64,000 nucleotides of DNA from the NCBI GenBank assembly GCA_965644265.1, contig OZ286459.1, positions 88,226,001-88,290,000 on the forward strand, written 5' to 3'. The stretch comes from Glycera tridactyla (lineage: Eukaryota). The translations under genes were made by a program, and so were the position numbers. Under the pieces are notes generated by a model. It was not told the DNA's origin and searched no databases. It saw only the letters and a program-made list of their open reading frames with translations. Below, in pieces: positions 15,031 through 41,560 of this stretch (position 1 is its first letter; each line of letters opens with the position of its first letter).

Positions 15031-15319
15031 CGAGTACAAAAACACATTTACAAACATGACAATTCAATACATACAACAATATACAGTGAAAATTAAAATG
15101 CAAAATGAAGAATGAAAATAAAGAAAATACAACAACAACATTCAAAAATGCAACAGCTCATTTACAATCAAGTCAAATTCAATGCATAGAGCTATTTACA
15201 ATGAGGTTGAATATGCATAAATGCCAGCTAGATGACCGTGTCAAAGTCCGTTACACAGACAGCGCATACAGGGAGTCCAAAAAGACACATCAAGAAATTG
15301 TATCCGATATCTTACTATA

Positions 15320-18259
15320 CTAAACTACCTCGCGAGGATTAAACGACAGTAGGCCAGGGTCCTTCTTCAGACAATGCTTGAAACTACTAATAGAAGGTGC
15401 ATTTCGTGTATCTGTATCAAGGGCATTCCAAATATGAGCCCCACGAATGAAAAAGTCACACTCAGACTTTTTAAGACGAGTGCCTGGAATACGCAAACAC
15501 CCTCTCGTATTTGCCCTGGTCGTGCGTGTGCCAGGTATGAAAAGATCCTGGAATATGCTCCTGGAGCTTACTGCACAAATATTATTTACGATCTTATAAA
15601 ACTCACACGCAGTGTGAAAATTCCTTGTTTGAGTCAAGGTGTAAAGCCCAGTTTCCGAGTAGAGGAAATCTCTGGACGTGAGAGGGTCGCATTTCAGACA
15701 AATACGTATACCAGAGTTGACTAATACATCGAGCCTATTTGATAATTGCTTGTTTATACCGGCATATATCGTGTCGCCATAACTTGTCAACGATAGGATT
15801 AGCGTCTTGAACAGATGCAGTGCAAGTTTCCTGTCTATGAAAGGTCGGACACGTCTGAGCATTCCTAGCCTGGATTTCAATAGATTACACAGTTTATTAA
15901 TGTGTGCCTCAAATGATAGACAGGGGTCGAGCCAGACACCGAGATATTTGAGAGAGGTGACTGTTTCGAACTCCATGGTTGAGTCAATATGTGTGCAACT
16001 GGCAAGTTTCTGTGAAGTTCCAAAAAACATCATCTTCGACTTCGCAGTATTAAGGCTTAGTTTGTTAGTAGACAGCCACTCCCTAACTAGTTCCATATCG
16101 AGACTAAGTTTGTTACAAACTTCGACTTTGGTTCTTGCCGTGGCCAAAAGAGCAGTGTCGTCAGCATACATGAACACTCTGCAATTGTTAATAACTAAGG
16201 CCAGAGTGTTTATGTACAAGACAAAAAGCATAGGCCCCAGAATCGAGCCCTGGGGGACTCCATAGGTAACTGGTTTAAAATCAGACAATTTTGTGCAAAA
16301 TTTTACTGATTGTTTCCGATTGGATAGATAGGAGGCAAACCATGTTACACTGGATCGTCTAAAGCCCAAAAGACTCAGTTTCTCAAGAAGTAGCGCGTGA
16401 TCCACGGTATCAAACGCTTTAGTCAGGTCTAGGAAAACCACTCCACTCACTTCCCCATTATCCATTGCATTATAGATTGCATGTGTAAAACTTGCAAGAC
16501 AAGTGACAGTGGAGTGGCTTCTCCTAAAACCTGACTGACTATCCGAAAGTATATTGTGTGAAGAAAGGTACTCACTGCATTGTGAGTGAACTACCCTCTC
16601 AAGTAGTTTCCCAAAACTTGGTAGGACTGATATAGGTCGATAGTTGTGAACATCCGATAGACTGCCCCCTTTGTGGAGCGGTGTAACAACTGCTCTCTTC
16701 CATTGGGTTGGGAAGTGTCGATCTCGAATGCTACGGTTAAACAAAGATATAAGGTGACTTTTTAGACTATACCCTCCATCTCTAAGAATTCTAGATGTGA
16801 TATCATCTTCCGCGGATGCACCCGAGTTGCTCATTTTATTTAAGGCCTCGTCATAGTCATTTTCAGCAATTGCATGAAGTTCGAAGACAGGAGCCAAACT
16901 TGCTACGGGGGCGATTTGGCTATTCATTGGTGCTACTATCTCATTTGCTAGGGCTTCTCCTATGTTTGTGAAATGAGTATTAAACTTCTCCGCACTAACG
17001 CATGGGTCCTCGCTGATTCCACCCACAGTAAGCTTTGTGCTTTCTTTGACTGATTTCTTCGAGGGCCAGAATTCTCGTATTGCTTTCCACAATTTTTTCG
17101 GATCACGAGAGAACTTTTCGACTTTATTTAAAATATAATTGCGCTTTAGAGAATTCTTAAGCCTGGAGCATTTTAGGGCAGCTTCTTTCTTTTTCTTTTC
17201 ATGGACAGGATCCTGACTTCTATTGAAACGAGAAGACCAGTATTCCCTGCTGTCAACGGCAGCTAGGAATTCATTGTTGGCCCATGGGGCATTTGAAATC
17301 CGGCGACTAGATGTGATAACAGGTAGATGTTTGTCAAGAATTGGCAACAAAAGTGCATGAAAGGACTCTGTGCAGTTATCCAAGTTAGGGTATTCTTCAG
17401 ATTTGAAAGCCATCTCATCAATATCCTGTTGAAAAGCTAGCCAATTAAAATTTCTATATGATCTGAAGATGGTTTTTTCTTTTCTCTTACTCTGTTTTTC
17501 CCGCTGTCTGAATACATATATTAGGCAATGGTCACTGAGACCAGGATCAAGGACGCCTCTCAGACTGAATTGGGTACGATTATTACTGAGGATATGATCA
17601 ATGCAACTTCTGCTATGGCGACTAATTCTAGTAGGATTTGTTATCAGTTGATCGAGACAGTGATTTGTAAGAAACTCTTTATAACGGCGGGTATGTGCTG
17701 AAGAGACCAGAGTATTCAGATTCATATCACCTAGGCAGAGGACGTCAGCATGTACCGTGCCCACTGCAAGTTCCAGACTTCCCGAAAGAATATGGAGGGC
17801 ATTTTCTAAACTTCCATCTGGGGGGCGGTATATATTCCCTATAAAAGTTGGACGCGTCTGCGGGAGATCGAGCCTCACCCACATGATTTCGATATCTGGG
17901 GTACAAGTTGAAAATTTGTCCAAAAATGTATATGTGTGATTTCTGTTTGCATAGCATAGTAGTCCTCCTCCCCCATTCTTTCCAGACGCAGCTGTCCTGT
18001 CAGCTCGAAATAATTCAAAGCCATTTAGTTGTAATTCAGAGTCAGAGATGGAGCTGTTGAGAAATGTCTCGCTTAATGCTAAGAAGTCAATTTTCCCTCG
18101 TGTGAGTAGGACCTCAATTTCATCTTGCTTCCGAATAACGCTTCTTATATTCAAATGTGCAAAGCACATTTTGGGTTGTCTGCTGAGAGCAAGTATAGAA
18201 TACTCCAAAGGGTCTACCGCCCTATCTAGTGGGAACGGGGCATTATCGATGAGCGCCAT
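15320..18259 (-). CDS. LINE ORF2: apurinic-like endonuclease (APE/EEP) + reverse transcriptase, 979 aa
   Basis: APE motifs HLNIRS, LALSETFL, RADR, IGNIYRPP, LGDMN, PTR, CIDHI, LSDH. RT motifs YRPISVLP, QSGFR, FLDLTKAFDTVDH, GVPQGSILGP, YADDT, LNTAKSK, YLGVWLD. C-terminus FYKIVN...IWNAL with no CCHC knuckle or restriction-like endonuclease, typical of CR1/L2/Crack. No stops or frameshifts. Confidence 0.97.
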   Translation of the reverse strand: MALIDNAPFPLDRAVDPLEYSILALSRQPKMCFAHLNIRSVIRKQDEIEVLLTRGKIDFLALSETFLNSSISDSELQLNGFELFRADRTAASGKNGGGGLLCYANRNHTYTFLDKFSTCTPDIEIMWVRLDLPQTRPTFIGNIYRPPDGSLENALHILSGSLELAVGTVHADVLCLGDMNLNTLVSSAHTRRYKEFLTNHCLDQLITNPTRISRHSRSCIDHILSNNRTQFSLRGVLDPGLSDHCLIYVFRQREKQSKRKEKTIFRSYRNFNWLAFQQDIDEMAFKSEEYPNLDNCTESFHALLLPILDKHLPVITSSRRISNAPWANNEFLAAVDSREYWSSRFNRSQDPVHEKKKKEAALKCSRLKNSLKRNYILNKVEKFSRDPKKLWKAIREFWPSKKSVKESTKLTVGGISEDPCVSAEKFNTHFTNIGEALANEIVAPMNSQIAPVASLAPVFELHAIAENDYDEALNKMSNSGASAEDDITSRILRDGGYSLKSHLISLFNRSIRDRHFPTQWKRAVVTPLHKGGSLSDVHNYRPISVLPSFGKLLERVVHSQCSEYLSSHNILSDSQSGFRRSHSTVTCLASFTHAIYNAMDNGEVSGVVFLDLTKAFDTVDHALLLEKLSLLGFRRSSVTWFASYLSNRKQSVKFCTKLSDFKPVTYGVPQGSILGPMLFVLYINTLALVINNCRVFMYADDTALLATARTKVEVCNKLSLDMELVREWLSTNKLSLNTAKSKMMFFGTSQKLASCTHIDSTMEFETVTSLKYLGVWLDPCLSFEAHINKLCNLLKSRLGMLRRVRPFIDRKLALHLFKTLILSLTSYGDTIYAGINKQLSNRLDVLVNSGIRICLKCDPLTSRDFLYSETGLYTLTQTRNFHTACEFYKIVNNICAVSSRSIFQDLFIPGTRTTRANTRGCLRIPGTRLKKSECDFFIRGAHIWNALDTDTRNAPSISSFKHCLKKDPGLLSFNPREVV

Positions 18260-18605
18260 CGTAGATAAAGTGGCGTGGAATTATGTGAAATCGGGACTCG
18301 CTCTGTATCTGAAGATGGTGGAGCATTCAGATAAAACAAGTGTATAGATCAGGACCGTTTGTATGACCGAGGGTATGAGATAAGGTTGCATCTATCAGTT
18401 TTCTGTTTCAGGGAAATGATCAGATTTAAATAGACAGAGTGTGTGAGACATGACAAACACGACTACTCACCGACTGAGCCTGCAATCTTCAGCATTTTTA
18501 CAGCTGAATTTGTCAGATTAGCCCTTAAGCTGGCTGAACTCACCTGAGTATAGAGGCTTTGAGACACATGATAACAACTGTTAAGTAAATTTCAAGTCAA
18601 GGTTA

Positions 18606-20835
18606 GCCTGCCCCACATAGGGCCTGCAACCATTTTAATTACACATTCTCACACTGTATCATGGAGACCAGCATCAGTTATCACTGACGAAGTATCACCA
18701 TACAAACACCATAGATGAGGTTGATACACAGGGCTGGCACAAAACAGGAACTGTACAGGCGGATATTTGCAGCTAAAATCAAGCCCTCGATGTGGCTGGT
18801 ACAGCGATCAAGACATGTCAACAAATAAGCAGGCAGATATTTCTGCTTAACTCACCAGAGCATAGGTGAGCTCTAAGAAAAAGAAATTAATTGATGAGTC
18901 TATGTGCATTATGAATCCTAAACGTGTGAGTTCTACATGACATCTGGTGGCACAATAAAAGTCTGGCGGCAGTCGCCGATTCCACTAGGTGGTGGTGTAG
19001 CCTGAGCTGAATTGGAAAGAGGTGGCACTAGATGGCACTTCCAGGCCAAGGATGTTGACCGCTGGTAGTTCAGAGCTATTCCGATACAAACATGGTTCAT
19101 CAAGGTAAGGGCGGCATGAGGAAAACTTGGAACAGGGGGACGCTCTGTACAGATAGTTTGCATAATCAGATCAGAGGGAGAAATCTGTGCTGTCTTATGC
19201 AGGCACATATTGAAATCAGGTGAAATAGAGTACCGTGCATAAATCATACATCAATCAAAGCACATCAGTCAAGATTCATATACCCAGGTGTTGCGTAACT
19301 ACCGCTGGGGGCGTAGGTTGGTCGAGCTGAGATCTGATAAATTTGGTTGGAGCTGTTCATAGCTGATGAATGTCCGTTGGTATTGACTGAGGCATAAATG
19401 GCGGCACAGAATTACATGCAAAGCACAAGGTAAAGTTATATCTTCAAGAGGACAATACATACATCATGCAAAAATCAAGGCACATCAATCACGACCCATA
19501 TACCAGAGGTATTGCACAACTATCGCTGGGAGCGTAGGTCGGACAGGCTGAGGTCCGTCATATAAGTCTGAGTTCTAGACAGCTGATGATAGTCTACCAG
19601 TAACAACGAAAGCGAAGAGCTGTGGCACAGAATTTCATACAATGCAAATGATTCTATATGTCTCTCAAAAACACATGAGGTTCATATGACCTTTTCAAAA
19701 CTAGCAATTTGACCTGAGGCTGAATTGGCTTTACATAGATGACCTTCCACTCGAGACAGCTTCCAGAGGCTTATGGATGTGAAGACCAGTATCTGGGATA
19801 CAACTGAGTACACCTGCCCCACATGGGGCCTGTGTCATTTTTCGTGTGTAGTAATTTTTGCCTGCCCCAGATAGGGCCTGCATTCGATTTTCGAGAAGCC
19901 AGTATGTAATCTTGTATGGGGGTGAGACTTGAAGGCAAGCATAGAGAGCATCTTGTAGTGGTGATGCGTATATCCCGGTAAGTACACCTGCTCCAAATAG
20001 AGCCTGTGATCTGTGTAGTAGTGGCGCCAAAGAGAGAAAACTGGTAGAATGGAGAATGCCTGCCCCCGATGGGGCCTGCCTGCATGGAGAGCATTTCATT
20101 CAGCTATGATTTTGGGTGTGTAATATTCCAGTGAGTATACCTGCTCTAAGTGGAGCCTGTGATCTATGTGGTGAGGTGGCCGAGAGAGAGAACAAGAGAA
20201 ATGTGGGATAAATGCCGCCCCATTTCAGGCCTGTGAAACCTGTACAGAGTGACCGGTCGCTACTGTGACTACTCATCGATAACTCAGAGAGGCATGTGTT
20301 GGATCTGACTGCAAGTACAAACTTCCCATGTTAAGTGATTCATGCCGGTGGTGGAGTGACAATACGAAATCTGCATAGGCCTGCCCCAAGTAGGGCCTGC
20401 ACATGTTTGTTGTCAGTAAATCAGAACAGGCATGTGGTGGATCTGACTATAATATAGAATTTCCCAGGTCATGTGATTCACGCCAGTGGTGGAGTGACTA
20501 TACAAAAGCTGCATAAACCTGCCCCAAATAGGGCCTGCACATGTTTGTAGGATAGTTGTAATATTTTGCCTGCCCCAGATAGGGCCTGCCCACGATTTCG
20601 AGAAATTGGTGCATAAACTGGCATGTGGTCGAAGCAACTGGTGTGGGAGAGGACAATTTTCACGTTGAATCTATAGCAGTCGACATGAATTATACGCTTG
20701 CCCCACATAGGGCCTGCAGGATCAGGCGACAGGGTTTAGTAATGCGATTGATTGGCGAAGGCAGTGCAGGTCATTTGTAATTGGTGCTGGCTGAGTAACT
20801 CCAGTTGTGAATGCCTGCCCTACATAGGGCCTGCA
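18606..20835 (-). repeat. 12 dispersed copies of a 22-nt hairpin motif (sense consensus CAG-GCCCT-AYNT-GGGGC-AGG) in the inter-ORF region
   Basis: Plus-strand copies of CCTGCCCCacatAGGGCCTG start near 18606, 19812, 19860, 19986, 20058, 20139, 20214 (degenerate), 20379, 20517, 20568, 20696 and 20813. Start-to-start spacing within the cluster is irregular, about 48-165 bp. Confidence 0.88.
19258..19640. repeat. Diverged direct duplication, 220-bp period, inside the LINE spacer
   Basis: GCACATCA at 19260/19480, CGCTGGG.GCGTAGGT and AGCTGATGA in both copies, GGCACAGAATT at 19404/19624. Confidence 0.8.
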
Positions 20836-21047
20836 ATTTTCATCACACGAGACAAGTCTGTTTCATGATAATACATGCGTTGAGAGAGATGGGTCTGCTT
20901 AACATTCATACACAAGCGTCTCTCATATGCATGTCGAAGGCGACGTGCCATTATAGGATAGGGGTGGGGTATGAACCAAGTGCCGCTGGAGTTTGGTGAA
21001 GAGGACAGTTTGATTAAAGTTCAAGATCAGCGAGCCAAATTTTCTCT

Positions 21048-21968
21048 TCATGCATACCTTTTTTCGATTTGCAGCGATGTTCCGCAGTACTCCAAGATTC
21101 CATAGATTGCGTCACGTGCAAAGGCCTGGTAGCCCCAAGTGTTGAGGTGGGTGCCATCTTTGCACAGGAGGCCCCTCACTATGCACGCGTTTGCTGGATT
21201 GAAATGGTTTGCCCACTCAAAATCGTAATAGAGCGACTTGTAGATTGTACTCTTGACTCTTACGTATTTAGATACGGTTCTGTTCACAATGTATATGATT
21301 CTTGACACGAAGACACGAGTTTCGTAATCCCACCACTCTCTTGGCAAGATGGAGACAAATGAGATCGCAGCCCCGCGTGTGCGACTATGCACATCAATAA
21401 AGAAATCGATCATGTATGGTTCCAGAGACTCAAGCCACTCCTCTCGGGCTTCATCAATTGCAATTCTCGCTTGGGTGTCACTAAGAGCTCCACGAAGGAA
21501 TTTAACATGTTGATCGAAATCATCGGCATCATTTGACCCAAGATTCACCACGACATATTCAGCTCTGTGTCCCGTTTCTCGATATGTTTTCCAGATGTTG
21601 CCATATTCCTGAAACTTTCGGGTATTGCCTCCAAAATCACCATGCAAAAATCGTTTAGCTGTGTGAAATTTCAGCCCACTAATGCCTAAGAATTTTGATC
21701 TGGACAGCATATCATAGAGGTGTGAGGGGAAGTCATCCTTGACAAATTCTGTAATACAATGTGAGATGTGGGAATCGCCTATGAAGACCACCCTAGGGGG
21801 ACCATGATTGTACAGGTGTGTTTCCGCCACTCGACGTGATTTTTCTTCATACCAGGGCGTCACATGAGTCATGGCTTGGTACTTATCTGCGTCAGTTATG
21901 TAGATGTTCCTACGCTTCCAGATTGGTAGAAAACGACGAAAAATGGGTTCATTGCCAACGTATGCCAT
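21048..21968 (-). CDS. SGNH/GDSL hydrolase (esterase), ~306 aa from the first ATG; retrotransposon-encoded
   Basis: Block I VVFIGDSH (Ser nucleophile, ~21771-21779), block II FLGISG, block III VVNLGSND, block V KDGTH (Asp/His, ~21147-21158). The ORF-track start at 22049 is a TTG; the first ATG is at 21968, overlapping the last 20 nt of ORF1. Confidence 0.9.
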   Translation of the reverse strand: MAYVGNEPIFRRFLPIWKRRNIYITDADKYQAMTHVTPWYEEKSRRVAETHLYNHGPPRVVFIGDSHISHCITEFVKDDFPSHLYDMLSRSKFLGISGLKFHTAKRFLHGDFGGNTRKFQEYGNIWKTYRETGHRAEYVVVNLGSNDADDFDQHVKFLRGALSDTQARIAIDEAREEWLESLEPYMIDFFIDVHSRTRGAAISFVSILPREWWDYETRVFVSRIIYIVNRTVSKYVRVKSTIYKSLYYDFEWANHFNPANACIVRGLLCKDGTHLNTWGYQAFARDAIYGILEYCGTSLQIEKRYA

Positions 21969-24900
21969 GTTGAAGATTCGGAAATTCGCTTTGGATAAAG
22001 TTGCCACTTGCGTTTGGGTAGCTGTTATTCGAGACCTGATATTGCACAACCGGCTGTGGCGGCTGTGGTGGCTGTTGTGTTGGGGGGAGCAGTGGAGGAA
22101 TAAATCTCTGCTGGTTTTGTGGCGGTCCTTGGTTCCAGTATTGGTGTAGATTGCTCACAAGGGGACCATTTCCAGCAAAACCTTGAGTGCTTTGTTGGTC
22201 GGTCTGGTATGCGAGGTTACTGAGCCTTTCACTTATGTTCTGGTTGCTCTGAGTGTTGTAGTTTGTGAAATTGCTCCCGTTCTGGTTCACTGGTGGTGCC
22301 TGTGTGCGCTGCGGTGGGACAGGACCAGGTGGACGAGTAGCAAATCCCATGGCAGGAGTGTGCGGTGCTACTCGACCCTGAGTAGGCATACTCATGCGCG
22401 GTTGGAACTCGCATTGGTCATTCCATGTCTGCCTCCCGCGAGCACCCTTGAATCTATTTTGATTGCGCTGGATCTGATATGCGTCATTTTTTAATACTGC
22501 AGCTGGTCTTTCTCGGTGTCTGTCTTGATCATCGTTTGTCGGTTCTCTCTGCATTTGTAATTCTTCACGAAGTTTTGCTGAGTCGCGAAGAAGAGTTGGA
22601 ACTGAGTCAACTGTGCGAGTGGCCCAAATACGGCCCATGTCAGACCATACATGGTTATATCTTTTCAGTTTTCTTGCAGACCTTGCGAGATAGAAGATGT
22701 TATTATTGACTGGTGTTAAATGCTCATTGATGAAAATCTCAGTTCCTTTTAGTTTACCTTTTTGTTTCATGATCCACTTCTTCATATCTGTGCGGTACAA
22801 TTTTATACGAATGGCACGTGGTTCGGGGGGTTGAGTTTTGGCTGGCCCGAAGAAGTAGCAACTCTCGACTTCTTCTTTAGAGAGAGTGACCCCTAGTCTA
22901 TCATGAAACATTTGGATCACCGTAGGGAGCACTTCTGGGGGGGAGTTAACCTCCACTCCCTCAATTATCAGCACATTTCTACGCTCAAGCATTTCTGTTG
23001 TTTCCATACGAGCTAGTAGTTTGTCAAGTTCGGTCTTAAGGTAGTTAAGCTTGTCATTGTGGTCCTTGATGCTGGAAAGGCTCTCATTGGACGTTGACTT
23101 TTCTTCTGCCATTTTCAAAGCATTTTTAGCTTGAGTCAGGGCCTCCTTTGCTGCTGAATTTACTCTTTCACACTCCAGCTTTGCAGTGGCTATGTCCTTT
23201 TTCATTTGTTGGACTTCATTTGCTCTGGCCTTTTCGTCATTGTCATTGCGCATGTCGCTAGTGATTTTCAAGGCGTCTGTGGCCTTAGTTAGGGCTTCAC
23301 TTGCGGCAGAGTGAATCTTGTCACTCTCATTTCGTGCTGATACAAGCTCACGATGAATCTGTTCAAGGTCATTGTTATTTAATTGACTTAGTGTGTCGAG
23401 ACGTTTTGTCATTCTAGACAATTCCAGATCAAGCTTTAGAGTATCAGAGGATTGGGAGCCCAATTTGACATTTATCTTGTCAAGTGGGTTAGACATAGCA
23501 GTGTGTATAAGATCTGGCAGTCTCCCAAGCAACTTAGTCAAGATAGAGTTTTCAAGCTCCTGCATTGCTTTTATTGGTAGGTGGCTGAAGTCAGTTGAGG
23601 TCGAGGCATTCAGTTTGTTCTTAGGGCCAAGGAGGGGCGGCTGAGGAAGAGAGAGGGGACTAACGACTTCTGGTGGTGAAATTCCAGAGTGGATATCGAG
23701 ACCATTGCTGTCACCATCAGATGGCGGTTCCACCTTACTCGGATTATCATATGCTTCTGAATTCGTCGGTGATCTTTGCGCACATGGGATGGAGAGATCA
23801 AGGGAGCTGGCTGCAAGTTGAGAGTTTGAGTCAGGAGCATGTTTAATCGGTGTACTTGACAGGGGATTCATCTGCGGGTGGCCGCTAGGTGTCAGGCCAG
23901 TCATTATTGCATTTGAGTCGTCCATTCTATTAGCAAGTTCTTCTTGACTGATCGGAGATGCGACGCGTGTTTTCTTAGATTCAGTATTTTTGGTACTTTC
24001 AGAATCGGGTTCTTGCTGGTTGGATTCCTCAGATGGGCTGCTGTGGGAGCGTTTCGATCGTGGGGTAGTATGTGGGGTATCATGGGGTTTATGCTTGTGC
24101 CTGGGTGTGAGAATTGGTGAGGGTTTGCATTTCGAGGATGTAATGCGTCGTGTAGGCGTATTGGCTGAGAAAAGAATGGGGCTGCCTGTCGGAGAAGCGG
24201 TAAAGATCGCGGGGATGACATTTTGTTTAGGTGGAATGTCTGCGGATGAAGTCAGAGGTATGTTTGACATGTCATGTGTTGATGTGTTACGAATTGTGGA
24301 ACTACTCTTTTCGTTATCTTCGCCCGAATCCTCGTCATCAGACAAGACAATAGAGTTATCACCACTGACTATTTTCAAGTCTTCGACTGTCTTAAGAATA
24401 ATCTTGTCCTCTTTGCGAAAGAGCTCACTTTGCTGGGTTCCGTTTATGACAAAAGAATCTTCAGTTGTATCATGCCCAGAGTAACTGTCAGGGGCAGGAC
24501 TGGCAGCGGTGGCAACTGGAGTGACAGCCTTCAGGGCATTTTGGGGGCTAAGTTCTTTGATGCCGGGTATTTTGAGTGTTTCGCTTTTCTTTATTCCTCT
24601 TTCTTCTACTCCATCATCAGGGTCTGGAGTAGGGTTAGCTGAATTGGGAATGACCTGAGGGGGGCATGCCACAGAGTTGGCAGAAGAGTCAGCTGCGGTG
24701 TGATTGACCTGAGAGGGGCATGCTCCAATTTCAATGTTGCAGGTGTTATGCTTGATTGAGCTATCTGTGTCAGAGGTCATGTCAAGTGAGGGAATACTCG
24801 GCTCATTGAATGAGATTCTACCTGTATTGGGGGAGGGTTGTGCGTCCTCTGCTATACCTGTTTTCGCAGGTGTAGCTGGGTCAATTACTGCCTTGCTTGA

Positions 24901-25332
24901 TGGTGAAGCTAGCCCAGGGGGGTCAACCCTAAGGTCTGACATTGTCACTGAGACTCTCCCAAGTTTGTGTCGACTGCTATAGAGACCGTTTTCCATGTTT
25001 TCGCTACTGTTAGACATTGAGGGATCACCCAGGCCTAGTCTAGTAGCTTTATGAGGGCTCTTAGGGGAATGTGATGAGAGCTTGAAGCAGGGGTTCGCAA
25101 GACGGCGTCCTGGGAAGCAACTTAGTGGAGTACCCCCCCTCTGTTGTGCTGGGTTGCTGCGGCGGTCACCAATGTCAACATTTCCTTTGTCACCCGCAAT
25201 AGAAGATAAAAATGCCTCTGTTTGGCATGGTTTCACCTTATTTGATGAATCTGCATCCATCCCCAGAGTCTCATAAACGTATTCGGTCATCCGTTTTTGG
25301 TCCGGTCCTAGATCTTGTCCCAATTTGCGCAT
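21949..25332 (-). CDS. LINE ORF1 (RNA-binding chaperone-like), 1127 aa
   Basis: Long S/P/T/D-rich disordered N-terminus, heptad-rich coiled coil (~22985-23500), then RRNVLIIEGVE...RAIRIKL...KLKGTEIFINEHLT...YNHVWSDMGRIW (~22600-22985), resembling the RRM+CTD module of L1-type/CR1 ORF1 proteins. Q/N/P-rich tail. Same strand as, and upstream of, ORF2. Confidence 0.87.
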   Translation of the reverse strand: MRKLGQDLGPDQKRMTEYVYETLGMDADSSNKVKPCQTEAFLSSIAGDKGNVDIGDRRSNPAQQRGGTPLSCFPGRRLANPCFKLSSHSPKSPHKATRLGLGDPSMSNSSENMENGLYSSRHKLGRVSVTMSDLRVDPPGLASPSSKAVIDPATPAKTGIAEDAQPSPNTGRISFNEPSIPSLDMTSDTDSSIKHNTCNIEIGACPSQVNHTAADSSANSVACPPQVIPNSANPTPDPDDGVEERGIKKSETLKIPGIKELSPQNALKAVTPVATAASPAPDSYSGHDTTEDSFVINGTQQSELFRKEDKIILKTVEDLKIVSGDNSIVLSDDEDSGEDNEKSSSTIRNTSTHDMSNIPLTSSADIPPKQNVIPAIFTASPTGSPILFSANTPTRRITSSKCKPSPILTPRHKHKPHDTPHTTPRSKRSHSSPSEESNQQEPDSESTKNTESKKTRVASPISQEELANRMDDSNAIMTGLTPSGHPQMNPLSSTPIKHAPDSNSQLAASSLDLSIPCAQRSPTNSEAYDNPSKVEPPSDGDSNGLDIHSGISPPEVVSPLSLPQPPLLGPKNKLNASTSTDFSHLPIKAMQELENSILTKLLGRLPDLIHTAMSNPLDKINVKLGSQSSDTLKLDLELSRMTKRLDTLSQLNNNDLEQIHRELVSARNESDKIHSAASEALTKATDALKITSDMRNDNDEKARANEVQQMKKDIATAKLECERVNSAAKEALTQAKNALKMAEEKSTSNESLSSIKDHNDKLNYLKTELDKLLARMETTEMLERRNVLIIEGVEVNSPPEVLPTVIQMFHDRLGVTLSKEEVESCYFFGPAKTQPPEPRAIRIKLYRTDMKKWIMKQKGKLKGTEIFINEHLTPVNNNIFYLARSARKLKRYNHVWSDMGRIWATRTVDSVPTLLRDSAKLREELQMQREPTNDDQDRHRERPAAVLKNDAYQIQRNQNRFKGARGRQTWNDQCEFQPRMSMPTQGRVAPHTPAMGFATRPPGPVPPQRTQAPPVNQNGSNFTNYNTQSNQNISERLSNLAYQTDQQSTQGFAGNGPLVSNLHQYWNQGPPQNQQRFIPPLLPPTQQPPQPPQPVVQYQVSNNSYPNASGNFIQSEFPNLQHGIRWQ

Positions 25333-26965
25333 ATTTCGATAGAAAAATCCAGAGCTCCGTTGATGTGTGTCCTCTACTCTCGCATGCTCACAATCACATC
25401 AGCGAAGTCTCTAATTACTGAAATTGATATAATTAGTGCCTGGTAGCTTTTCCCTCAGCAAAAAGATATTCTTCTCTGAATCAGATCTTCTGACTATTGA
25501 TTTTCATCACAGCAATATGTTTTAGCACGCGTCTATTAACGATATCAATATTCGAAACGAATGTGCTATTTGATTCATCTTCCTTGACCCGCATGAGGCC
25601 GTTGATCCTGTTATACCCGAAACCGTACTGTGCATATTGTCAACATTTGGAATTATAGACTATTTGATTTGTTGATTCGGAATTCATCTGAGGGGTAGGA
25701 TGAGGCTAGTGGAAACCATTGCAAGTAGGTAATATCACTTGCCGGTTCCGACAGGGGTCGATTTCGGACCTGCTTTTGTTCGTGCTTCTAATGAATGACT
25801 CAGCAAATGTTATCAATTGTGGTATTGTTCGAATATATGAAAATGATACTGAGATTGGTGCTCACATTTTTGCGAGAAGGTAGACGGCTGTGTCTGGAAA
25901 ACGTCTACATGGATAATGTATTGGTGTGGTGAAACTGGTCCACGTTGCTCTCAGTTATTGAACTCTGACCTACATGTGATCCATTTCCGGTTGCCATTGT
26001 TCCTTTGGTCGTCCAAATCAATGATAGATTAGTGACTGGTCTTTTGAACAGCAGTGATCTCTGATACAGAAGCCAATTGAGCTCCGCCATTGTAATTCCA
26101 TGCCCGTTAAAGGACAGAATTGCATGGAAGAGGTTGGGAGATTAGATATTTTTCTTTTGCATTGGGGGAAAATTGGCTCAAGCCAATTCACTAACAGATG
26201 GGGTTCTCTACGTGAATCGGCTACTGGAGTAATACAGAGCTCATTCATGCCTGTCGTCAGATGATTCATTTATGTATGACACATGAAGCTGTGTGCAGGA
26301 TATGGCCTGCCTGAAAATATTAGTCATGAAACCCATTCCAAAGTCGATTGCCAATTGATTAGCTCTTTGGTGATAGGTATCGTGAGACTGTTGACGGAAA
26401 CTACAATTATTCATCTTATTCGGAAAGATTACAAGCAATTGATTACAATCTGTATGTCCAGAAGCCTTCTGGTTCTCACTAGGGGGATGTCATACTCTAC
26501 GGTATTCACAAAGAATATTCCTCAGGGAAACCTAACAAACGATTTTGCTGTTACAATGAAAGTTTGCCGGTGAGTGAGACATATTTTATGGAATCCACGA
26601 GAAGTATATGCTTTACAAGACAGCATCCTTATGAAAAAAGATTCATAACTCAGGTGATGATTGGTCATAATCCCGGTTAGGCGGAGACAGTAGCCTGATG
26701 GTAGCAAATACTGGCAGTGTACGAAGGTCAAAGTACCATTTTTCCTTCATTCCAAGTGTCCACTTCATCTCAGAACAAATGGGCACTGTCGATTGATATG
26801 AGTTTCCGTTGAAGATCCCAACAATCAGAAGTCCTCACAGGTATTTTTCCAGCATTTGGCCTTCTAGTGAAATAGTGATTCAGGGATCAGTATATCAATC
26901 CGGTACTCGCTTTCTATCCATCTTGATGATCAAAGACGAAGCTATTGGATAAGGACGAGAATGTC

Positions 26966-29645
26966 AACCGTCAGCATCTTGATCAGGTAAATGCTGTAGC
27001 GATATGTTAGCGGGGGTGATGACAAGTAGGGCCAAAGATGTCGAATATCACCATCTCACTGCTACTGAATGCTGTGGCGATATGTTAGCGGGGGTGATGA
27101 CAAGTAGGGCAGAAGATGTTGAATATCACCATCTCACTGCTACTGAATGCTGTGGCGATATGTTAGCGGGGGTGATGACAAGTAGGGCAGAAGATGTCGA
27201 ATATCACCATCTCACTGCTACTGAATGCTGTGGCGATATGTTAGCGGGGGTGATGACAAGTAGGGCAGAAGATGTCGAATATCGCCATCTCACTGCTACT
27301 GAATGCTGTGGCAATATGTTAGCGGGGGTGATGACAAGTAGGGCCGAAGATTTCGAATATCACCATCTCACTGCTACTAATGATCCATCATCACCCAGAG
27401 CAACCGTCAGCATCTTAATCAGGTGAATGTTGTAGCAATATGTTAGCGGGGGTGATGACAAGTAGGGCAGAAGATGTCGAATATCGCCATCTCACTGCTA
27501 CTGAATGCTGTAGCGATATGTTAGCGGGGGTGATGACAAGTAGGGCAGAAGATGTCGAATATCACCATCTCACTGCTACTGAATGCAGTAGGGATATGTT
27601 AGCGGGGGTGATGACAAGTAGGGCAGAAGATGTTGAATATCACCATCTCACTGCTACTGAATGCTGTGGCAATATGTTAGTGGGGGTGATGACAAGTAGG
27701 GCAGAAGATGTCGAATATCACCATCTCACTGCTACTGAATGCAGTAGCGATATGTTAGCAGGGGTGATGACAAGTAGGGCAGAAGATGTCGAATATCGCC
27801 ATCTCACTGCTACTGAATGCTGTGGCGATATGTTAGCGGGGGTGATGACAAGTAGGGCAGAAGATGTTGAATATCACCATCTCACTGCTACTGAATGCTG
27901 TGGCAATATGTTAGCGGGGGTGATGACAAGTAGGGCAGAAGATGTCGAATATCACCATCTCACTGCTACTGGATGCTGTGGCGATATGTTAGCGGGGGTG
28001 ATGACAAGTAGGGCAGAAGATGTCGAATATCGCCATCTCACTGCTACTGAATGCTGTGGCAATATGTTAGTGGGGGTGATGACAAGTAGGGCCGAAGATG
28101 TCGAATATCACCATCTCACTGCTACTAATGATCCATCATCACCCAGAGCAACCGTCAGCATCTTAATCAGGTGAATGTTGTAGCAATATGTTAGCGGGGG
28201 TGATGACAAGTAGGGCAGAAGATGTCGAATATCGCCATCTCACTGCTACTGAATGCTGTAGCGATATGTTAGCGGGGGTGATGACAAGTAGGGCAGAAGA
28301 TGTTGAATATCACCATCTCACTGCTACTGAATGCTGTAGCGATATGTTAGCGGGGGTGATGACAAGTAGGGCAGAAGATGTCGAATATCACCATCTCACT
28401 GCTACTGAATGCAGTAGCGATATGTTAGCGGGGATGATGACAAGTAGGGCAGAAGATGTCGAATATCACCATCTCACTGCTACTGAATGCAGTAGCGATA
28501 TGTTAGCGGGGGTGATGACAAGTAGGGCAGAAGATGTTGAATATCACCATCTCACTGCTACTGAATGCTGTGGCAATATGTTAGCGGGGGTGATGACAAG
28601 TAGGGCAGAAGATGTCGAATATCACCATCTCACTGCTACTGAATGGAGTAGCGATATGTTAGCAGGGGTGATGACAAGTAGGGCAGAAGATGTCGAATAT
28701 CACCATCTCACTGCTACTGAATGCTGTAGCGATATGTTAGCGGGGTGATGACAAGTAGGGCAGAAGATGTCGAATATCACCATCTCACTGCTACTGAATG
28801 CTGTGGCGATATGTTAGCGGGGGTGATGACAAGTAGGGCCGAAGATGTCGAATATCACCATCTCACTGCTACTGAATGCTGTAGCGATATGTTAGCGGGG
28901 GTGATGACAAGTAGGGCAGAAGATATCGAATATCACCATCTCACTGCTACTGAATGCTGTAGCGATATGTTAGCGGGGGTGATGACAAGTAGGGCAGAAG
29001 ATGTCGAATATCACCATCTCACTGCTACTGAATGCTGTGGCGATATGTTAGCGGGGGTGATGACAAGTAGGGCCGAAGATGTCGAATATCACCATCTCAC
29101 TGCTACTGATGATCCATCATCACCCAGAGCAACTGTCAGCATCTTAATCAGGTGAATGTTGTAGCAATATGTTAGCCGGAGTGATGACAAGTAGGGCAGA
29201 AGATGTCGAATATCGCCATCTCACTGCTACTGAATGCTGTGGCAATATGTTAGCGGGGGTGATGACAAGTAGGGCAGAAGATGTCGAATATCACCATCTC
29301 ACTGCTACTGAATGCTGTGGCGATATGTTAGCGGGGGTGATGACAAGTAGGGCCGAAGATGTCGAATATCACCATCTCACTGCTACTGAATGCTGTGGCA
29401 ATATGTTAGTGGGGGTGATGACAAGTAGGGCAGAAGATGTCGAATATCACCATCTCACTGCTACTGAATGCTGTGGCGATATGTTAGCGGGGGTGATGAC
29501 AAGTAGGGCAGAAGATGTTGAATATCACCATCTCACTGCTACTGAATGCTGTGGCAATATGTTAGCGGGGGTGATGACAAGTAGGGCAGAAGATGTTGAA
29601 TATCACCATCTCACTGCTACTGATGATCCATCATCACCCAGGGCA
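26966..29645 (+). repeat. 78-bp satellite, 32 copies in four higher-order blocks (5, 9, 12, 6)
   Basis: Unit GATATGTTAGCGGGGGTGATGACAAGTAGGGCAGAAGATGTCGAATATCACCATCTCACTGCTACTGAATGCTGTGGC. Each block opens with CAACCGTCAGCATCTT.ATCAGGT and closes with TGATCCATCATCACCCAG. Copies counted from the repeated peptides in the ORF track. Confidence 0.97.
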
Positions 29646-29899: not shown

Positions 29900-30340
29900 C
29901 ATCATCGTCATCAAAGTCCATTCAGTTATGTCGAAACCGATTCACGTTTCTTTTATCGTCATCAGTGTATAATGTCCATTTAATGAGGTAGCCGGTACCT
30001 TTGGCGACAAGACTCGAAACCGGTTAACGATTCTTCCATTGTCATCAGTGCACAAAGTCCATTTAATGATGTAGCCGGTACCTTTGGCGAGAAGACTCGA
30101 AACCGGTCAACGTTTCTTCCATTGTCATCAGTGCACAAAGTCCATTTAATGATGTAGCCGGTCCCTTTGGCGAGAAGACTCGAAACCGGTCAACGTTTCT
30201 TCCATTGTCATCAGTGCACAAAGTCCATTTAATGATGTAGCCGGTACCTTTGGCGAAAAGACTCGAAACCGGTTAACGTTTCTTCCATTGTCGTCAGTGC
30301 ACAAAGTTCATTTGATGATGTAGCCGGCGACAAGACTCAT
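29900..30340. repeat. 83-bp tandem repeat, ~4.5 copies plus one degenerate copy
   Basis: ATTTAATGA recurs at 29978, 30061, 30144 and 30227, with a partial copy at 30310. Confidence 0.93.
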
Positions 30341-41079: not shown

Positions 41080-41269
41080 ATGATAGCAGTAATAGCAGTG
41101 ACGGCACCAGCAGCATTGCAACAGTAGCGCAGTAGCAGAAGTAGTAGTAGTAGTAGTAGTAGTCGTAGTAGTAGTATAGTGGTAGTAGTAGTAGTAATAT
41201 TAGTAGTAGTAATAGTAGTAGTAATATTAGTAGTAATATTAGTAGTAGAAGTAGTGGTAGTGGTAGTAA

Positions 41270-41304
<35 letters not shown>

Positions 41305-41393
41305 TAGTAGTAGTAGTAGTAATATTAGTAGTAGTAATAGTAGTAGTAATATTAGTAGTGATATTAGTAGTAGAAGTAGTGGTAGTGGCAGTA

Positions 41394-41439
<46 letters not shown>

Positions 41440-41485
41440 TAGTAGTGGTAGTAGAAGTAGTAGTAGTAGTGTTAGTAGTAGTAGC

Positions 41486-41517
<32 letters not shown>

Positions 41518-41560
41518 GAGGAGGAGGAGGAGGAGGAGGAGGAGGAGGAGGAGGAACGAT
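41080..41560. repeat. Compound (TAG)n/(GGA)n microsatellite
   Basis: Imperfect GTA/TAG triplets 41080-41516, then GGA triplets to ~41555. This explains the low-complexity ORFs in the track. Confidence 0.97.

Follow-up and report, generated by a model that had tools for sequence, protein, structure and literature searches.

We examined a 64,000-nucleotide (nt) stretch of Glycera tridactyla DNA (assembly GCA_965644265.1, contig OZ286459.1, positions 88,226,001 to 88,290,000 of the forward strand), referred to below as the window, and found on its minus strand an apparently intact long interspersed element (LINE), a non-LTR retrotransposon in which the open reading frame (ORF) for an apurinic-type endonuclease and a reverse transcriptase is preceded by an ORF1. 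A long spacer between its ORFs holds 12 copies of one small RNA hairpin, and related elements carry a different array at the same place. We propose that selection has retained small structured RNA motifs, multiplied by duplication, in the spacers between the ORFs of two or more related LINE lineages, with sequences that differ and a design that is shared, and we put the probability of this reading at about 0.75 to 0.8.

An earlier reading of the window from its letters alone (the sequence-only reading) had described 12 hairpins on the sense strand of a LINE inter-ORF spacer, and a pattern search bears this out. With the 20-nt consensus CAGGCCCTATGTGGGGCAGG and up to three mismatches we obtained 10 matches, all on the minus strand between 18607 and 20833, and 0 in 100 shuffles. 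Allowing six mismatches added two degenerate copies, at 20140 and 20214, and none further on the minus strand of the 64 kilobases (kb). The 10 good and two degenerate copies follow the pattern CAG-GCCCU-AYNU-GGGGC-AGG, all on the sense (minus) strand of the LINE and all in the spacer, whose assignment was upheld by mapping ORF1, an esterase ORF and the endonuclease and reverse transcriptase ORF on that strand. A covariance-model scan had been suggested as a way of seeing whether the motif is confined, and over the 64-kb window the model built from the 12 copies (R1) recovered only those 12, at 27 to 41 bits, with the next match at 10.9 bits. The copies are listed below with their coordinates and, where given, the folding free energy (dG) in kcal/mol.

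h1, 20813 to 20834, minus strand: pair 5 is U-A; dG -12.5
h2, 20696 to 20717, minus strand: AA instead of AG in the 3' internal loop
h3, 20568 to 20589, minus strand: 22-nt core identical to that of h10
h4, 20517 to 20538, minus strand: outer pair G-U; 31 nt after h3
h5, 20379 to 20400, minus strand: 138-nt tandem duplicate of the h4 unit
h6, 20213 to 20234, minus strand: degenerate, with a 4-base-pair stem and six mismatches to the consensus; dG -6.1, 27.5 bits
h7, 20139 to 20160, minus strand: pair 3 U-A, outer pair A-U, C.A mismatch at pair 5
h8, 20058 to 20079, minus strand: pair 5 C-G, loop AUCG; dG -14.6
h9, 19986 to 20007, minus strand: two compensatory changes, to U-A at pair 3 and to A-U at the outer pair; z score -4.2
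h10, 19860 to 19881, minus strand: core identical to that of h3
h11, 19812 to 19833, minus strand: pair 5 C-G, outer pair A-U; 28 nt after h10
h12, 18606 to 18627, minus strand: matches the consensus exactly; follows h11 by 1186 nt and precedes the ORF2 AUG by 347 nt

Eleven of the 12 copies are packed within 1 kb (19812 to 20834), the first starting some 213 nt past the stop codon of the esterase ORF. Doublets spaced 28 to 31 nt apart occur, and overall the spacing is irregular, from 28 to 1186 nt. The spacer is rich in duplications: a 138-nt unit is present 1.9 times, there are 50-nt and ∼215-nt repeats, and hairpin doublets are themselves repeated. The ∼215-nt tandem duplication lies at 19245 to 19650 (repeat families D6, D7 and D14), in the central part of the spacer, which has no hairpins. 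The 1.2-kb stretch that separates h11 from h12 could have been inserted or expanded later.

The common fold consists of a 2- to 3-base-pair outer helix (R-C...G-Y), a 2x2 internal loop (AG/AG), a 5-base-pair stem (GCCCU/GGGGC) and a tetraloop of the A-Y-N-U form that had been described; the outer helix and the internal loop extend the structure beyond the stem-loop first recognized. Folded singly, the 10 good copies adopt this shape, h7 retains it with a 4-base-pair stem and a 6-nt loop, and the degenerate h6 has the 4-base-pair stem only, with dG over all 12 ranging from -6.1 to -14.6 kcal/mol. Among the 12 copies no variation is seen in the A and G on the 5' side of the internal loop or in the first base of the tetraloop, and very little in the 3'-side bases of the internal loop or in the last base of the tetraloop; it is the paired positions that vary. 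Conservation of unpaired bases is typical of RNA that is recognized by protein.

Complementarity is kept where the paired positions vary. At the seven real pairs 80 of 84 cells hold standard pairs, and in a slid-partner control pairing falls from 88.5% to 27 to 49%. The fifth stem pair occurs in the states originally listed, as U-G in seven copies, C-G in two and U-A in one, and is mismatched in the remaining two. The third (pair 12-21) changes from C-G to U-A on both sides in h7 and h9, just as had been read in the copies at 20140 and 19987, and a second compensatory change, from G-C to A-U, affects the outer pair (6-27) of h7, h9 and h11. The claim that pairing is preserved preferentially in the sense RNA also held, the sense strand folding better than its complement in 12 of 12 copies (mean minimum free energy [MFE] of -11.2 versus -8.5 kcal/mol), mainly because the commonest fifth pair is U-G.

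The contrast between motif and flanks that the sequence-only reading had pointed out is borne out. Over the 66 pairs of copies the 22-nt core averages 79% identity, whereas the 40-nt flanks are 32 to 36% identical, the level found between random 40-mers of the spacer (32%). Three independent pairs of recent duplicates (h3/h10, h7/h9 and h4/h5) can still be aligned outside the motif, and in these the core shows 5 differences in 66 positions against 48 substitutions in 255 aligned flank positions (Fisher one-sided P = 0.017).

A second and independent array comes from related elements, which we know from short metagenomic contigs (GCA_013332675.1, JAAUYI). The closest ORF2 among 5.8 billion proteins is only 41% identical to that of the window; the contigs L001, L002 and L003, of which the first two are 99.7% identical to each other, carry ORF2 proteins at 41 to 44% identity and have the same gene order as the window LINE. 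Their ORF1 likewise has a coiled coil and an RRM-like block, and their esterase ORF is again separate, 29% identical to that of the window (E = 5e-38) and with a long extra tail. In the 1.1-kb spacer of the L001 type a different motif of 26 nt, GCC-GA-UUC-AAUCCA-GAA-GA-GGC, occurs eight times and is followed by YUUAG. All eight fold into a 3-base-pair helix, a 2x2 internal loop, a 3-base-pair helix and a 6-nt loop, which is the design seen in the window. Here the covariation is clear: the six real pairs are paired in 48 of 48 cells, five of the six show double compensatory changes representing at least five events, and 0 of 500 shuffles reach the observed values. The L001 hairpins form two triplets with a spacing of 36 to 45 nt, and the last hairpin lies ∼224 nt from the ORF2 AUG. 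In both elements the first hairpin stands ∼213 to 215 nt after the upstream stop codon (window, 20834 to 21047; L001, 5775 to 5989), with intervening sequences that cannot be aligned; the equal distance may be a coincidence or a spacing constraint.

The two motifs are distinct at the sequence level. Covariance models of the window and L001 hairpins detected neither each other's array nor a further family member in the 29 to 30 fetched loci searched, and the same was true of regular expressions for both motifs in 86 fetched loci. The parts of the spacer without hairpins (from the stop codon to the first hairpin and from the last hairpin to the AUG) showed no meaningful conservation between the window and L001 or another relative, L011. 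A further contig, L090, has an ORF2 38% identical to that of the window and begins inside the spacer; upstream of ORF2, at 17 to 417, it carries four copies of GGAC(A/G)GCUCG..A(A/C)CCUGC(U/C)GGCCA. These could fold as helix, 2x2 loop and helix, with one A-U to G-C change and weak energies, and may represent a third hairpin array of the common design, on evidence weaker than for the other two.

The element in which the window array resides is laid out as follows, in the direction of transcription.

25332 to 21949, minus strand: ORF1, 1127 amino acids, with a disordered N-terminal part, a predicted coiled coil, a putative L1-type RRM and C-terminal domain, and a Q/P-rich tail
21968 to 21048, minus strand: putative esterase ORF (SGNH/GDSL type), with its own AUG at 21968
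18260 to 21047, minus strand: inter-ORF spacer between the esterase ORF and ORF2, 2788 nt, non-coding, with tandem duplications
18259 to 15320, minus strand: ORF2, 979 amino acids, apurinic-type endonuclease and reverse transcriptase
14953 to 15319, minus strand: 3' untranslated region (UTR), ending in a long stem-loop (not related to the array hairpin), AAUAAA and an (AAATTC)n tail

The 979-amino-acid ORF2 product matches the RVT_1 (E = 3e-35) and Exo_endo_phos (E = 7e-7) profiles, and both ORF1 and the esterase ORF lie upstream of it on the same strand. The esterase AUG is upstream of the ORF1 stop codon (21951 to 21949), so that the two ORFs overlap in different frames. Scores of the esterase product for Lipase_GDSL (22.2 bits; cut-off, 23.6) and Lipase_GDSL_2 (21 bits; cut-off, 32.9) both fall below the Pfam cut-offs, and the SGNH-type blocks FIGDSH, GSND and DGTHLN can be read in its translation. 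For the C-terminal part of ORF1 we found no sequence match in Pfam or the PDB. Its AlphaFold model (predicted local distance difference test score [pLDDT], 78) had the human L1 ORF1p trimer as all ten of its best PDB matches, with E values of 6e-6 to 2e-4 over ∼200 columns and template modeling (TM) scores of only 0.33 to 0.40; with that low TM score, the modeled region reads as a coiled coil, an L1-type RRM and a C-terminal domain. A LINE with an L1-like ORF1 and a putative esterase in separate ORFs is what we observe in the window, and L001 and L002 share this three-ORF layout. According to Schneider et al. (2013, PMC3905857), none of the ORF1p sequences in Repbase that include an esterase has an RRM or another known RNA-binding domain; in the present element, by comparison, the esterase and the predicted RNA-binding function occur together, in separate ORFs.

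What might such arrays be for? The sequence-only reading had suggested loading of ORF1p or the esterase, RNP condensation or recruitment of the translation machinery as candidate roles. Our tentative answer, to which we give a little less than an even chance, is that the array would serve as a multivalent platform for a protein encoded by the element, most plausibly the trimeric L1-like ORF1p. The element specificity of the motif, the fact that its unpaired bases are the most conserved and the grouping of the hairpins favor this assignment. A different motif sequence on a common architecture in related elements may point to coevolution with an element-encoded binder over a conserved host factor, and the doublets of the window and the triplets of L001 fit a multimeric binder. 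In the model that we propose, hairpins would arise by duplication inside the long inter-ORF spacer and be retained by selection in the lineage of active elements. The array would then dock an element-encoded RNA-binding protein specifically and multivalently, the best candidate being an ORF1p trimer with its coiled coil, RRM and C-terminal domain. Several trimers could nucleate on the element's own RNA beside the ORF2 start, and the outcome would be self-recognition and assembly of a ribonucleoprotein (RNP).

A bolder version, which as a whole we consider rather unlikely, is that there exists a clade of three-ORF LINEs (L1-like ORF1, esterase ORF and endonuclease and reverse transcriptase ORF) in which fast-evolving, element-specific arrays of one small hairpin, set in a long inter-ORF spacer, would let the ORF1p trimers of an element recognize its RNA as their own, in the manner of packaging signals. 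Such an array might amount to an RNA barcode for sequence-specific cis or self preference, coevolving with the RRM and maybe coupling RNP nucleation to ORF2 translation. The cis preference of LINEs and the translation of ORF2 from a polycistronic RNA are long-standing questions that are usually answered without a sequence-specific RNA signal, and hairpins that are repeated, covarying and specific to the element, placed between the ORFs, would offer something concrete to mutate in addressing both. The array predicts a specific RNA-protein pair, and two or three related elements with different hairpins of one design lend themselves naturally to swaps. Long inter-ORF regions of LINEs would moreover prove able to be functional RNA and not junk.

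Several observations weigh against these proposals. One genomic copy of the window element was available for comparison and its best ORF2 relative is 41% identical, so selection was deduced from paralogous hairpin copies and not from an orthologous comparison. The covariation in the window is weaker than the headline of the sequence-only reading, which called the hairpins covarying: the compensatory changes at pair 3 and at the outer pair stand, but they amount to two successive events in one subfamily (h7, h9 and h11), and 20 of 500 shuffles reach the score. They are suggestive, not decisive, and alone would not carry the claim of a selected structure. When the whole 1-kb array is folded, its MFE structure pairs many copies with each other and not locally. 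The L001 hairpins show no strand preference in their folding energies (-6.55 versus -6.54). L011, which has an esterase ORF and an ORF2 at 36% identity, has a spacer of ∼0.5 kb that lacks an array, so the array is not essential to the clade. As for the binder, L1-type ORF1p is known to bind RNA largely irrespective of its sequence.

The main rival account, unlikely in our view but the best placed of the alternatives, is that the hairpins control translation of ORF2, either because they recruit the small ribosomal subunit or a host factor, so that ribosomes initiate internally or are shunted across the spacer, or through a bound protein that throttles ORF2 synthesis. The sense strand of the 2788-nt spacer contains 73 AUG triplets, and ORF2 begins at its own AUG, a homologous start conserved with L001; it is thus hard to see ORF2 being reached by leaky scanning or simple re-initiation, and an internal mechanism of some sort is called for. 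The arrays of both elements are confined to the spacer upstream of ORF2, the loops are pyrimidine rich (AUCU, AUUU and ACUU), and there is a precedent in mouse L1, in which an internal ribosome entry site (IRES) upstream of ORF2 is reported to bind hnRNPL and nucleolin (PMC3592465). Set against this, the last hairpin is 347 nt from the AUG in the window and ∼224 nt in L001 with no conserved sequence between, IRESs are not known to consist of a single small hairpin repeated in an array, and L011 makes do with a short spacer that has no array. A conserved host factor might moreover be expected to keep the sequence of its motif, yet the two elements share none.

Binding of a host protein for RNA localization, export, stability or evasion of silencing, for example germline targeting of the kind attributed to the localization stem-loops of other LINEs, strikes us as distinctly improbable, even though the evidence for a selected, sense-strand RNA motif of the protein-binding type would serve it equally and localization signals are commonly built from a small zip-code-like hairpin in several copies. 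It is again the absence of a shared motif sequence between related elements, together with the lack of an Rfam match, that tells against it.

Very improbable, as we see it, is a neutral origin in which the spacer grows by tandem and segmental duplication and carries a near-palindromic motif along, or homogenizes it, with no function involved. The spacer duplications already described are in its favor, as are the tandem repeats in the spacers of relatives (627-nt units in L006, for instance) and the modest covariation of the window. A by-product of this kind does not fit a motif that is 79% identical while the flanks of most copy pairs are at random-level identity, that changes less than the flanks even in recent duplicates (P = 0.017), and in which covariation of the paired bases goes with little or no change in the unpaired ones; nor does drift produce the L001 pattern, in which every pair is intact despite five or more compensatory double changes. 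The compensatory changes and the contrast between motif and flanks disfavor both this explanation and a motif acting at the level of DNA. The latter, a cluster of transcription factor sites forming an internal or antisense promoter or an enhancer, is the least probable: homotypic clustering of a ∼20-bp motif in one orientation is a usual feature of promoters and enhancers, the core reads as an inverted repeat (GCCC..GGGC), and an ORF2-only transcript would solve the problem of the 73 AUGs, but the conserved CAG and AGG flanks are asymmetric, the U-G that predominates at the fifth pair becomes a mismatch when read on the opposite strand or by the symmetry of the duplex, and changes that keep complementarity (C-G to U-A and G-C to A-U in the window, U-A to G-C or C-G in L001) are a signature of base pairing, not of protein-DNA contacts.

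The sequence-only reading knew of no such array in a LINE, and our searches agree. An Rfam 15 scan of window positions 14000 to 27000 gave only three sub-threshold chance matches, none of them on the hairpins, and no match was found in the L003 or L090 spacers; no similar array was described in the papers that full-text searches on stem-loops between LINE ORFs, packaging signals for ORF1p and signals for ORF2 translation brought up. The histone stem-loop, the iron-responsive element, the selenocysteine insertion sequence (SECIS), the k-turn and the Smaug and Roquin elements were rejected on their loop and stem rules, and none was matched in Rfam.

The nearest systems are retroviral Psi and the packaging signals that single-stranded RNA viruses and phages carry dispersed over their genomes (such as the MS2 and PP7 operators, bound by coat protein). 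These too are small stem-loops with conserved loop or unpaired bases and variable stems, element specific and scattered over variable sequence in a genomic RNA, and they suit cooperative binding by a multimeric element-encoded protein. A LINE, unlike these viruses, has no capsid, and the window copies, known from sequence, are near-identical duplicates within one inter-ORF spacer. The A-repeat of Xist, bound by SPEN, resembles the array in its ∼8 to 12 short conserved hairpin cores with non-conserved linkers and in the competition of local hairpins with inter-repeat duplexes, which the MFE fold of the window also shows; it belongs, however, to a host long non-coding RNA and has regular U-rich linkers, whereas the window hairpins are irregularly spaced inside a retrotransposon mRNA. 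The mouse L1 inter-ORF/ORF2 IRES (PMC3592465) and the human L1 spacer (PMC4072516) occupy the same position, with ORF2 translation started internally; mammalian L1 inter-ORF spacers are usually shorter than 100 bp (PMC4072516) and have no repeated hairpin, in contrast to 2.8 kb with 12. Finally, the 3' stem-loop of stringent-type LINEs (L2/CR1-like), recognized by the reverse transcriptase, is likewise a cis-acting, element-specific LINE hairpin that coevolves with an element protein. It is single and at the 3' end, whereas the window element has a separate 3' stem-loop of its own, longer than the array hairpin and dissimilar to it, and R1 finds no copy of the array hairpin outside the spacer, so the two are not the same. 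We would place the array among the cis-acting retroelement hairpins of the putative protein-binding type; what is new is their repetition within an inter-ORF spacer.

At the 3' end of the window element (14953 to 15050, minus strand), a long stem-loop (dG -21, z score -3.7) is followed by AAAUAAAGUU and then by the (AAATTC)n microsatellite. The same order at a conserved position is seen in L001 (9925 to 10015), in which a stem-loop and AAAUAAAGUU precede a short (AAT)n tail. This is probably the region of reverse transcriptase recognition and polyadenylation. No second copy of the LINE was found within the window by blastn.

Upstream of the element, at 26990 to 29623, lie ∼32 copies of a 78-bp tandem repeat (94 to 96% matches) and, at 29931 to 30327, 4.8 copies of an 83-bp repeat. 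Both sit 1.7 to 5 kb upstream of the ORF1 AUG, in the same block of strongly skewed composition as the LINE. By analogy with mouse L1 they may be 5' UTR monomers, in which case the element would be ∼15 kb long.

Among more distant relatives (∼30% ORF2 identity) the place of the esterase is taken by an upstream ORF that encodes a NADAR domain (Pfam E = 2.5e-28), and the spacers measure 1.1 to 3.7 kb. The regions concerned are these.

L004, 6873 to 8870
L005, 7473 to 8831
L006, 1031 to 2449

The L004 spacer has none of the motifs described here, that of L005 a two-copy repeat and that of L006 three tandem units of 480 to 630 nt. An exhaustive search with the esterase gave 77 relatives only, and the three best small ones, when fetched, were on contigs of 1.3 to 1.8 kb that do not include the spacer. 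Two other candidates for spacer arrays were set aside. The repeats with a 9-nt period in L026 look like a coding or minisatellite repeat and not like hairpins. The cluster of TATCCAGTGGATA palindromes in L035 was rejected because the reverse transcriptase there belongs to a 5'-truncated copy beside an unrelated ORF; the cluster itself, four perfect or near-perfect TATCCA-N-TGGATA palindromes in 90 nt (1394 to 1484), lies outside that truncated copy and is unrelated to the hairpin arrays. Elsewhere in the window, at 41131 to 41555, a 244-amino-acid ORF on the minus strand encloses a long array of ∼140 trinucleotide units, (AGT)n followed by (AGG)n.

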